This document shows positions 1,117 through 7,100 of a stretch of 64,000 nt of DNA, piece after piece. The translations under genes were made by a program, and so were the position numbers. Source of the DNA: Bugula neritina (Eukaryota > Animalia > Bryozoa); assembly GCA_964035545.1 (NCBI GenBank), contig OZ037765.1, positions 6,086,698-6,150,697 of the forward strand, read 5' to 3'. Numbering within the stretch: the first letter of the stretch is position 1; every line of letters begins with the position of its first letter. The notes under the pieces are model-generated. The model saw only the letters and a program-made list of their open reading frames with translations, searched no databases and was not told the DNA's origin.

Positions 1117-4100
1117 ATGGAACTGGTCAGCTCAAATGGTACCACTCTTCAAGGACCCAGCTCTTTATCTTCCCGGGAAAGAGTATCTGAGACAACTGAT
1201 TTTGTTGTTTTTAATGGCCAAGGGAATTCCAGCTCGTATGATGAGCCAGATTTTGATCTATTTTCTAGTTTATCCCAGGCTGATGCTGTTGCTCAAGTAA
1301 AAGAACTTTTACAACAACGTGAGATGTTGCAAAGTAAGTGAGGTCATGTGTCTACTAGAATGCTAACATAGTTTATAAAATTATTCAATACACTCAGGAA
1401 ATAGTGCAACTATTCAATTCACTATATTATGAATATATTACAGGCAATTTTGCTGAATGCACACAGAGGTTGAGTGATATGACTCTGACATGTAATGAAT
1501 TGAAAGTTCAAGAGCAACAGAATTGTCAGAGAGCAAAAGATCGAATTGATAAGTTGTTGAAAGAAAAAGAAACTTTGCAAGAAGAGGTATATAAACTGAT
1601 GACTATAAATTACATCTGGGTACTGTAGGGCAAGTGGTCATTCACACTTATTTTACTATCCATTGGCTTATTCGCAATAAATTAAAGTTTATTTATGATT
1701 TTATTTCATTCGACTTTAAAATGCAACCATGTTCCATAAATTTACATACCTCAGTCAATATTTGCTGAGTATTTGCGCCAATCACAGGGTTTGGTTCAGG
1801 AGCGCATTTCTACTTTGATGCCACATCAGTACAGTCTTATCAAAATAAATTATTGTTAATTTTATAAATATTACTAAATTGCTGTGGGTTGGCCTGTGCT
1901 GTAATATAATGGGGATTTTTGTAGACTAACCAGATTATTTGACTGATCATCTACAGTTTTAATTTGTTGCTTTCTTAATTCGTTGTTACCATATGCACAC
2001 ATCTGTAGATTAAAAAGTTGAATGAAGATCGTTCTCCAGACATTAAACAGCCTGCACCTGCCCTCCATGTGGCTATACCTACAAGTGAGCAGATCTCCAT
2101 AGAAGAGAATACTTCTGAAAGGTTGCAGGATACACCTGTTGAATATTGCACCTCGGCACCTTTGACAGCACAAGGTGTACCTGCCAGTATCATGAGTTTA
2201 CGGGAAACGGAAGCTGAGGAGGTATTCACATTTCTTGATGTTTTTAGTCGAGTTTCAAACCTTGCAATATACTATAATAATATAGACCTTACAAGTATAC
2301 TTATTATTAGGTAACCATTGTGTTAAGATGAAAATAAGTGTACATTAAAAAGTACATTTTATAATAATAATTTTTAAAAACAATTGTTGTTATGTTATGA
2401 ATCATTTAATGTGCGTTGAGCAACAATGAGTTTGTAATATTATATTTAAAATTAGGAAAGAATTTATGCAACCAAAATATTTCTGGAATGTTAAATATTC
2501 AATTGTGAATAATATGGTTTCTGTGTTAAAAACATTTTAGTTGAGAGCACAAATACAAACACTGAAAGCAGAAAAGAATGATATTGAACTTAGACTTTGT
2601 GAGAGTGAAGAGCACAGCAGGCAAGTAGATTTGAAAAGAGAGGCAGCAGAACGGAGATGCGCTGACATCAGCACCCAATTCCGTCAATTTAGACAAGACA
2701 ATGATTTGCAACTGGTTAACCTCTCTTCTGCCAACGAAGAGTTGAGATCGAAACTGAAGCAAGCTGAGTCTGATATCCATAAACAAGCTGCAGAGTTTAA
2801 TTCTACAGTAAGTTTTTTAGTGAAATATGCAATTACTTTTGACACTTCTATGCCCGGACAATAGCATTAATGTTTCAGTTTTTAAATCAGTGCTGCAGAT
2901 ACTCATATAAGGCTCATTGCTTTGAAAATTGAACATTTTCATTCCTCAAACTTTTTATCGGTATTTTGTAATTTATTTTGTTGCTTGAGTGAGTAATGGA
3001 AACTCCGTAAATGTGTTGTAAAGCTTAGAATATGTATAGCAAAATTTAGATTAGCCAACTCAGGACAAAAATCAAGTTAAAGTAAAATGACTATGTCAAG
3101 TGTTACATTGGTTTTCAACTCCTAAATTTATACAGTATGCAAAAATTTGACAAGCTGTGTTTCATATACATTTGATTGACTGCAGATCTGTACATGATAA
3201 CTGGTACTACTTTTTGAAGGTTTTTTTGTTTTCAGTATAATTTATATTTGATTTTGTAAAAGCAATTACTGCAATATTTTTATTATACATTTAGATTTAA
3301 TTATCGAGCCAAAATTACGTTGAATATGATTGCTTCACATATGAATGAATACATACTGTATGAAAGAAATACCTTAAAACTGCTCAATTTAGTGGTGTTT
3401 CTACAGTGTAATAGTTTGTTAATGTTTATTGTTATAGTATGTATGAAGTTATAGTGTTATTCTTCTTTTTTCTTTTTAGCAACAAGAGATTTTAAAGTAA
3501 GTACTGATTTTATAAAACATTTGCTTTCATTATAGCTGTTTTATGGAAGTTAGTAACATACAGGCGATTGTAGATCTGTATTAAGAGTTATTGCTTATTT
3601 ACCGAACTACTTGAATTAAAAGTTTATTAGCTACCTTTATTTCCTAATAAGTATTAGTATTGGTATTTTGAATGTGCTTTTGGTATATTGTTTTGATTGT
3701 ATTTCTTTCTCATCTGCACAGTGGGCTGCGGAAGAAATGCAGTGAATTAGAGACTTCTTATGCGTGAGTATTATTTGTTGCATACAACAGTTTATATCTT
3801 CATTAACTTTTCAGAATATTTCAAGCTATACAAATGAAAATTATCAAGATTTCATATTTGATACGAATCAGCTTTTAATGAACAATCATCAAATTCTTGT
3901 GTATTTATTTGAGAATTATAGAAATATGTACAACTATTTCATCTTTTACTTTTCATCTACTTGTGTAAAATGCTAAATATACTAACTATGGTGCATAGAA
4001 GAAAATTTAGTGGAGAATAAAAATGCACATTAATAATCAAGTCATGTATAAATACTTGCTCGTTTGTATTGTAGAAACCAGGTTCAGATATACGCTGAAG

Positions 4101-7100
4101 CTCAGAGGTAAGTTAGTGTATTTTTACTCTGTTAGTGCAAATTGTCATAGCCATGCTTTGACTAGTCAGATACGTTTGATACGTTCTATAGACACCTGAC
4201 TGATAATGCATATTAACCAAACATCTGTATAGTAGTAACTAGTACTTGTGGATTTCATATTATGTTTTTTTTTAAATTATTTTGCTTTTTATTTTGTTGG
4301 CTCTGTGTTTCATACTTATTGATTGTAACTATTTTATGTACAGGGAGTGGAGTTCGAAAGAACAAGCTTTGATTGCTGAGTGCCAGTAAGTAACTTTTGC
4401 TACTTTAAACAAAGTTTTTATTTGACATTTTACCTTCTAGCCATATGCTGTATATATTTTCTAGCTGTGTGCTGTATTTATTTTTTAGTTGCGTGCTGTA
4501 TGTATTTTCTAGTTGTGTGCTGTATTTTATCGTATTTTTTGGTTTTATTATTTAGATGTAGTCAAAGCCCAAGTTGAGTAAAAATTTCCATATATTGTTT
4601 TCAAAATACAAACATGTATATTATATGTCTTATATATATATATATATATATATATATATATACGTATATATATATATATACGTATATATATATATATATA
4701 TATATATATATATATATATATACGTATATATATATATATATATATATATATATATATATATATATATATATATATATATACGTATATATATATATATATA
4801 TATATATATATATATATATATATATATATATATATATATATATATATATATATATATATATATACGTATATATATATATATATATATATATATATATATA
4901 TATATATATATATATATATATATATATATATATATATATATATATATATATATATATATATATATATATATACGTATATATATATATATATATATATATA
5001 TATATATATATTGTTTTGTTTTGTTTTAGTGACTGGCGAAAACGATGTTTAGAGCATGAAACATATAAAAAGTAGGTTTCTATAACCAATGTTTTATATT
5101 GATATTTGAATTACTGCTTTTTCTGTGTTTTCAAGAAAAAAACTTTGCAATTATATATTAAGCAATTGAACTCTTTTGATACTTTCAGATCTATGCAGGA
5201 AGCGTACAGACAAGTTCAAAGGTAAACTTACTAATAGAACTGCAATAAGTATGTTTAGATTATAACCGCATGCAACTTATGCTACATTCAGGTTACTTTT
5301 TATTCGTCCAGTTAGTATCAAATAATCATATTCCTTTTTATTGCAAACATTTTTAGTTTGAAGTACTTTCAATTAGGACATAGCTAAGAGTAGCGCTGAT
5401 CTTACTCAAACTTTACACTGTGTTTCAGCAATTAATGTCTAAATATATTCATGAACTTTTTTAAATAATAAATACAATTGCTCTTCATGTAACATAGTGT
5501 TTCAGAGAAGTTTAAATGCTATTTTGACAGTTATTTTTTGAATTAAAACTTTTTTTGAGTGAACTCTTTGACACAAGTTACAGAGATAAGTCTTTTGAAA
5601 CCGATGATGTTAATTAATACCTTGTATAAAAGCAAGGGTGGGGAGGGCTAGTTTGAAATTTGTTATTGTCTTGTGCAACGTTTTTAAGTTTTTTTTTTCA
5701 ATGATTACATTCTTCTTTAAAAAGTTCTAATTTTGTGCATTATATTCTGTCATTACTGATCTGTGCTGAAATGTGCAAATCAAACTTACTCTCGTTTGCT
5801 AGCACTGTCACATAGCTATGGTAAGAAAAAACTATTATGTAACTATTTTTATAATATGGAATGCCTTATGTCTGTTGGCTCTTTCAAATTGTAATGTATC
5901 TCATATTAAAATGAAAGCGAACTGAACGTTTTCTGAAAACTCTCAATTTTTTGTTTTATAGTGAGAAAACAAGTGTAGAGCAGCTTGCCCACACTTTGAA
6001 TGCGTAAGTTACTTACTGGTTGTTATCACTGTTTACACAATTGTTAGAATAGTCTACACTAAAGTTACAATAAGTTTAACTTTGCTCTTTTCTTATGAAA
6101 TAACTTCCAATGTTTATGGTTTAGGGAGAAGTACAAAGCTGATAGCATCATAGCAAAACTCAAACCGTAAGTAATAATCATGTATGGTATATTGATAATG
6201 CATTAGTTCTTAGAAAGTGCATCACTTGTAGTCTGGGCTTTTGATTTAAAAGCACACTGCTGTGACATTGATAGAAGTTAGAATCAGGCATCACTGCTTA
6301 CAAGTACTGCATATTTATTCATTTCGACTGCGGGTTGTGCATGTAATTATTTTAACAATATTTTTTATATGAAAATAGAAATATTATTCTTAAATATTAT
6401 TGCTGGAATCTTTTTCAAGGATTATAACAGATTGTGGAAAAAATATACATAAACTACAAGAAGAAAACGGCAAATTAAAGGAGCAATATGTGGAACTTCA
6501 GCAAACAAGTGATGGAGTCCAGCAGGAAAATGGGGAATTAAACAAGAAAATTGATCATCTAAATGCAAGGATTGAAGAGTTGAATCAGTCAGTCGGTGAT
6601 GAAATCTCAGTTTCCAATTCAAGGTGTGATGAGTGGAAGGAGAAGTTTAAATCTGAGAAGTTGAATAGTGAAAAAGTTAAAGCAGAGGTGGGCTGTCTTA
6701 CTAGCCGTTAGCTATTTGTCACATGATGTTAGAAATATTCTGTCTCAATATTGTTTAATGAAAACTTCCAAATTTTATGTATGTTTATTGTATTTAATTT
6801 CCTAAAAGTTGTATCACTCATTTTGTATTTAAATAATAGCTTTTGAGTCTTCAACAAGCTAATAAAAAATTTTCCGCCGACGTTGATCGTGAAAAGAGGC
6901 ACAATCAAAAACTTAATGACACAATCACTCGACTGAAGCAACAGAATGCCAACCTTGAAGGCACCGTCACTAAGCTGGAAAGAGAAATTGGCGAACTTAA
7001 CTCCCATAACATACAAATAGGCAGAGTCTTGACGCAGGCCGTGGCTAAACCCAGTATGTATGCCTCAGAGTATGATGTCTTCTAATTTATGTGCTATGAA

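Follow-up and report, generated by a model that had tools for sequence, protein, structure and literature searches.

An array of symmetric micro-exons in a predicted coiled-coil gene of Bugula neritina, with evidence for exon-block duplication

In fibrillar collagens (exons of 54 and 45 bp), and in the repeat exons of titin PEVK and nebulin, exons span whole numbers of the structural repeats of the protein, and the titin and nebulin arrays are partly cassette-spliced. The micro-exon genes (MEGs) of Schistosoma encode secreted proteins, with micro-exons making up most of the coding sequence, and generate variation by exon skipping. Microexons of the SRRM4 type are, strictly, no longer than 27 nucleotides (nt), are bordered by strongly conserved intronic flanks, and are included in a tissue-specific manner. 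The duplicated exons of the MADS-box K-domain measure 42 nt, which is equivalent to two heptads. In plant MIKC-type MADS-box genes, the heptad-repeat helix of the K-domain is encoded on short exons and has been lengthened by exon duplication (10.1101/2023.03.15.532791). Here we analyse a stretch of 64,000 nt of chromosome 1 of the bryozoan Bugula neritina (G000:C1:6086698-6150697; hereafter the window, with positions counted from its first base), in which eight micro-exons (m0 to m7) lie in the middle of a gene predicted to encode a coiled-coil protein. The assembly totals 216,009,554 bases, and the genome as published comprises 216.00 Mb on 9 chromosomes (PMC11480708).

We lean towards the reading that these are real, translated micro-exons, block-duplicated and constitutively spliced, that would lengthen one heptad rod. 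Part of the array would go back to an ancient duplication, in tandem, of three exons (42-33-42 nt, encoding 39 residues) together with their introns; the micro-exons would most likely be included constitutively, their short introns with near-consensus donors being recognised by intron definition; and their role would be to provide length for one continuous heptad rod. Duplication origin, constitutive inclusion, and a rod or spacer function are what we infer from the analyses below.

Coding evidence for the micro-exons

The gene model, in which exons were joined by script, has 16 exons on the forward strand and a 584-codon open frame, from an ATG at 1117 to a stop codon at 7954-7956, with the array placed between four larger exons upstream (A to D) and four downstream (E to H). 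The window is AT-rich (~32% GC) and its introns are short. The first micro-exon, m0 (3480-3496; 17 nt), takes the reading from phase 0 into phase 2; it is followed by m1 (3722-3763; 42 nt, 14 residues), m2 (4075-4107; 33 nt, 11 residues), and m3 (4344-4385; 42 nt, 14 residues), the last with the weakest acceptor of the array. Their counterparts are m4 (5030-5071; 42 nt, 14 residues) for m1, m5 (5189-5221; 33 nt, 11 residues) for m2, and m6 (5962-6003; 42 nt, 14 residues) for m3; m7 (6125-6166; 42 nt, 14 residues) most closely matches m6. The eight micro-exons, all on the forward strand, encode residues 281-378, i.e., 98 of the 584 residues (17% of the coding sequence). Each is preceded by a pyrimidine tract and an AG acceptor and followed by a GT donor, which reads GTAAGT in five of eight micro-exons vs. 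two of seven large exons. From m0 to exon E, every intron is in phase 2, and m1 to m7 are symmetric (phase 2-2), so that any subset of them could be removed without a frameshift. A sequence-only reading had described these exons beforehand, and its coordinates, sizes, translations, AG/GT borders, and phases were exactly reproduced here by reading and by script. The 17-nt m0 is obligatory for the frame, because it bridges the phase 0 left by exon D and the phase 2 that exon E requires.

Since the micro-exons were picked out by eye and are known from the sequence alone, they might be a chance chain of AG..GT segments, the true transcript using other splice sites; the tests described here make this very improbable. 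If exon D is spliced straight to exon E, a stop codon is encountered, and the complete 584-codon frame closes only when the micro-exons are included. When the 475 candidates between exons D and E (AG..GT segments, open and 12-60 nt long) were ranked by a generic splice score, the eight micro-exons occupied ranks 1, 2, 3, 6, 9, 12, 13, and 18, with m0 scoring best of all. Candidates of 33 or 42 nt and of at least equal quality number 26 in the 125 kb (both strands) of the rest of the window (0.21 per kb); ~0.5 would be expected in the 2.4 kb concerned here, where six are seen (Poisson P = 1.5e-5). Shuffling the 293-nt concatenate of the micro-exons leaves an open frame in only 0.14% of trials. 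The GC content is 0.33-0.48 in exons and 0.13-0.30 in introns.

The reality of the exons was further assessed by comparison with two relatives, found by word searches with exons D and E as open reading frames (ORFs) on genomic contigs. One, L005 (Logan SRR4020083), spans 766-4298 of the window; the other, L008 (JGI metagenome 3300003318), spans 5049-6909. Both are 86-90% identical to the window overall and probably represent sibling lineages within the B. neritina complex. Identity to L005 is 94.6% in exons vs. 82% in introns, and identity to L008 is 92.5% vs. 76%. Across the two siblings, there are no insertion or deletion (indel) events in 1410 exonic bases vs. 34 in 3633 intronic bases. Exact length, frame, and the AG and GT borders are retained in m0, m1, m2, the covered part of m4, m5, m6, and m7. 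Identities to L005 are 17/17 (m0), 41/42 (m1), and 31/33 (m2), and those to L008 are 23/23 covered bases (m4), 32/33 (m5), 36/42 (m6), and 41/42 (m7), the changes in m6 being two synonymous substitutions plus V>A, L>I, and A>V. In total, the micro-exons show six synonymous and five non-synonymous substitutions over 76 codons, giving a ratio of non-synonymous to synonymous change (dN/dS) of 0.18 (binomial p = 0.009), compared with 0.17 in the large exons; there are no stop codons in the sibling sequences. By these comparisons, the covered micro-exons are under purifying selection equal to that on the large exons, and on the comparative and coding tests together we take them to be real exons.

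The intron between m3 and m4 contains a 24-nt tandem repeat of 3.8 copies (4435-4525) and a (TA)n microsatellite (4631-5011; ~190 copies) that is periodically interrupted by ACGT. Matches to microRNA families in these repeats are weak and below the gathering score, and were rejected as repeat artefacts; a role as an intronic small nucleolar RNA host gene was likewise rejected, as the Rfam matches are repeat artefacts only.

Proposed block duplication and helical register

The sequence-only reading had proposed that the 42-33-42 triplet recurs through duplication of an exon block, and this proposal holds up quantitatively. When m1-m2-m3 is aligned with m4-m5-m6 in exon register, 12 of 39 residues are identical and the BLOSUM62 score is 40, a value reached by 1 in 100,000 shuffles (p = 1e-5). 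The second block is the best of 233 rod windows against the first, and only 0.05% of non-overlapping 39-residue pairs from the rod score as high (empirical p ~5e-4). The similarity is evident in the leading exons, with 6 of 14 residues identical between m1 and m4 (BLOSUM score of 25). Duplication of a three-exon unit together with its introns would explain the repetition of both exon sizes and intron phase. The introns of the two blocks share no similarity, and the duplication would therefore be old. We also considered whether exon E has absorbed a further 42-33-42 block, and rejected this, as the similarity is absent.

An account by intron gain would have seven or eight phase-2 introns newly inserted into a single rod exon, with the similarity between the blocks reflecting coiled-coil composition. 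Such an origin would fit the lack of leftover similarity between the introns of blocks 1 and 2, and the genome is rich in short introns. However, the similarity lies in register with the exon borders and exceeds that of 99.95% of 39-residue pairs drawn from the same rod; moreover, the same order of sizes (42-33-42) and the same phase would have had to arise twice by chance. We therefore regard intron gain as quite improbable and retain block duplication.

Heptad periodicity was analysed with our own crude scale of core propensity, based on hydrophobicity. Spectral power is 2.34 at a period of 3.5 residues vs. 0.76 at 3.67. The column of residues whose number modulo 7 equals 5 reads LCYYWLWHMVVLALCLLLVLLL from residue 285 to residue 432, and 21 of its 22 positions are hydrophobic (binomial 2e-9 before correction for seven columns). 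This stripe, with a period of exactly 7, is unbroken over 22 heptads, passing through every micro-exon border and into exon E; the best-phase heptad score is 0.58, vs. 0.26 +/- 0.04 in shuffles. On this crude scale, the array and exon E form a canonical heptad coiled coil. A second core stripe lies at +3 from the first in m0 and m1 and at +4 in exon E (columns {5,1} changing to {5,2}), so that the net change of register is one stutter (+4).

It had been suggested that the exon sizes correspond to the two common units of coiled coils, 42 nt to two heptads and 33 nt to one hendecad. The first equivalence stands, in that the 42-nt exons are two heptads of a true heptad coil; the second fails for the two 33-nt exons jointly. 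Two hendecads would amount to +8, equivalent to +1 modulo 7, and predict a {6,2} pattern, which is absent: column 6 of exon E, where two hendecads would place the main stripe, is polar (GQKQQNNN). Models with no stutter, or with one near m2 or m5, fit about equally well (0.58-0.64), and a two-stutter model is no better (0.60). No more than one 33-nt exon thus behaves as a hendecad, and, with a single stutter in the whole region, 33 nt does not represent a hendecad unit of its own. When register was compared with exon borders, the stripe proved continuous, whereas the borders fall at three different heptad positions. As the period-7 stripe is continuous, loss of a 42-nt exon would keep the register; loss of a 33-nt exon would shift it by 4 residues, adding or removing a stutter. 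The earlier proposal that any subset of m1 to m7 could be skipped harmlessly is accordingly correct for the reading frame and unsupported for helical register where 33-nt exons are concerned.

Splicing mode, predicted product and neighbourhood

The same properties bear on whether the rod is tunable by splicing, i.e., whether some or all of m1 to m7 are cassette exons whose inclusion would set the length of the coil by tissue or stage, as had been envisaged from the sequence. We consider this possible but doubtful. Seven symmetric exons that keep the frame in any combination would suit such a device, as would the removal of exactly two heptads from a continuous stripe with each 42-nt exon; in addition, the weakest combined splice scores are those of m3, m6, and m7, and the m6-m7 intron shows 95% conservation. 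On the other side are the 4-residue displacement of register that would accompany removal of a 33-nt exon, the predominance of the consensus donor GTAAGT, and the purifying selection that the covered exons share with the constitutive-looking large exons. Flanks (+/-50 nt) are also conserved to an ordinary degree overall: 86% around micro-exons, as against 82% around large exons and 78% in deep intron. Near-consensus donors and ordinary flank conservation lean weakly towards constitutive use of the micro-exons.

Several points weigh against our preferred reading of translated, block-duplicated, constitutively spliced exons. In animals, short exons of the symmetric type frequently serve as cassettes, so a degree of skipping would be unsurprising. 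The siblings cover 6.5 of the eight micro-exons, leaving out m3 and the initial 19 nt of m4: L005 ends (at 4298) 330 bases upstream of the (TA)n array, and L008 starts (at 5049) just past it, inside m4; two degenerate-pattern scans of metagenome contigs for m3 in relatives were blank. Because the siblings are only ~10-14% diverged, the counts for micro-exons alone are small (11 substitutions, and a probability of 0.11 of seeing no indel). The heptad stripe rests on our own crude scale, rather than on a trained coiled-coil predictor. Finally, a transcript-derived or annotated protein of this gene was not found in the protein collections searched.

The predicted product is a protein of 584 residues that is mostly alpha-helical coiled coil. 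By eye, it consists of a hydrophilic, acidic N-terminus, a non-helical linker, a rod of ~350 residues, and a C-x4-C...H-x4-H tail. Exon A (1117-1333, forward strand, as are all exons of the gene) carries the start codon and, in the gene model, encodes the acidic Ser-rich N-terminus with a DFVVF motif, ending where the first helix begins; it is 95% identical to L005 and free of indels. The motif, TTDFVVFNG (window 1195-1215; residues 27-33), reads DFVIING in the sibling and resembles an Atg8-interaction motif. Exon B (1444-1586) encodes coiled coil, exon C (2009-2221) the Pro-/Ser-rich linker, which is not coiled coil, and exon D (2541-2807) further coiled coil, ending in phase 0 at its 3' end; these three are based on the gene model and the L005 alignment. 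Exons E (6420-6687), which carries on the same heptad stripe, and F (6840-7053) both encode coiled coil and are based on the gene model and the L008 alignment. Exon G (7400-7449) encodes a short linker and is based on frame and splice sites only; exon H (7867-7956), from the gene model, encodes the zinc-finger-like tail and the stop codon. DNA-level and paralogue searches detected neither the gene nor the micro-exons a second time in the B. neritina genome; the gene is single-copy.

Family searches were made exon by exon. Pfam returned coiled-coil noise only, the tail in exon H reaching noise at an E-value of about 0.1, and for exons F and A, PDB sequence searches gave nothing specific and ESM Atlas searches nothing usable. 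When exon D was compared with 1.84 billion protein representatives, the sole relative was the sibling genomic ORF (P0001), a second match (P0002) being an unrelated repeat protein. The sequence-only reading had called the product an intracellular adaptor; "intracellular" is plausible, and the role of adaptor is unproven. By eye only, the protein resembles autophagy and NF-kB adaptors of the Optineurin/NEMO or TAX1BP1 type in having a hydrophobic motif within an acidic N-terminus, an extended coiled coil, and a zinc-finger-like C-terminus. In Pfam or PDB, however, no exon matches any family of this type, the NEMO, CC2-LZ (UBAN), and NEMO zinc-finger profiles or structures included, and a UBAN-like resemblance of exon F is non-significant. 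Identification as a SKICH-bearing TAX1BP1 was dropped, because the ATG lies in exon A and the upstream 15 kb encodes no SKICH or other such domain.

The same 15 kb contains only a gene that by eye resembles tRNA-His guanylyltransferase (THG1; G000:C1:6071698-6074300, ~12-15 kb upstream of the window start). Within the window, a short interspersed nuclear element (SINE)-like sequence of ~215 bp lies at 494-709 and has at least 40 copies of 83-87% identity on many chromosomes. A mobile element at 9244-13041 has ORFs resembling those of long interspersed nuclear elements (LINEs), with endonuclease and reverse-transcriptase features by eye. A long terminal repeat (LTR) retrotransposon at 13815-19509 has long gag-pol ORFs (14335-17019 and 16872-18851), and the two repeats on either side of them carry identical ORFs (13815-14006 and 19011-19202). 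From the ORF list, we recognised by eye an F-box/leucine-rich-repeat-like gene (~35000-36600, forward strand), a delta-tubulin-like gene (~38200-40800, reverse strand), and a class III phosphatidylinositol 3-kinase (Vps34-like) gene (~48000-55500, forward strand).

Comparison with known systems

Whether other genes share this architecture bears on its significance. It is unlikely, in our estimation, that several unrelated B. neritina genes build rods from heptad-sized micro-exons by a lineage-wide mechanism; if they did, exon duplication would lengthen rods, cassette splicing of 42-nt exons would set their length, and 33-nt exons would add or remove a stutter. No arrays of 42-nt exons were found in the 70 kb examined beside GBP-family matches on contigs C9, C5, and C6. 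Further matches to GBP-family GTPases lie on small unplaced contigs (G000:C208:24413-25147 and G000:C191:9224-10018) and read through many TAA and TAG codons (10 TAA and 2 TAG in one of them); this sequence may stem from a contaminating or associated organism, such as a ciliate, whose stop code is reassigned.

If confirmed by RNA, the locus would provide a clean animal case of a coiled-coil rod extended by exon-block duplication, in which both the phase and the two-heptad size have been kept. Since removal of a 42-nt exon would keep frame and register and removal of a 33-nt exon would add a stutter change, rod length and stutters would be separately testable, in a simple test bed from a little-studied phylum.

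The likeness to Schistosoma MEGs that the sequence-only reading had drawn is superficial. Both have tandem symmetric exons with lengths that are multiples of three; unlike MEGs, the Bugula gene has 17% of its coding sequence in micro-exons, and its N-terminus is, by inspection, hydrophilic. With regard to microexons of the SRRM4 type, only m0 (17 nt) falls within the strict size range, and the conservation of micro-exon flanks (86%) is to be compared with 82% for those of the large exons. Parallels are found in collagen, titin PEVK, and nebulin, which have in common with the Bugula array a single intron phase and tandem exon duplication. Their folds differ from a coiled coil (a triple helix, a disordered spring, and an actin ruler, respectively), and in the Bugula array only the 42-nt size fits the structural period, with borders at three heptad positions. 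The system closest in spirit is the K-domain of MADS-box genes; it differs in belonging to a plant transcription factor, an unrelated protein, in having two or three such exons vs. seven, and in lacking 33-nt members. The architecture of the Bugula array is thus of a known kind, in which repeat-encoding exons of one phase are multiplied by tandem duplication, and on present evidence it is an ordinary outcome of exon duplication, not a new mechanism.

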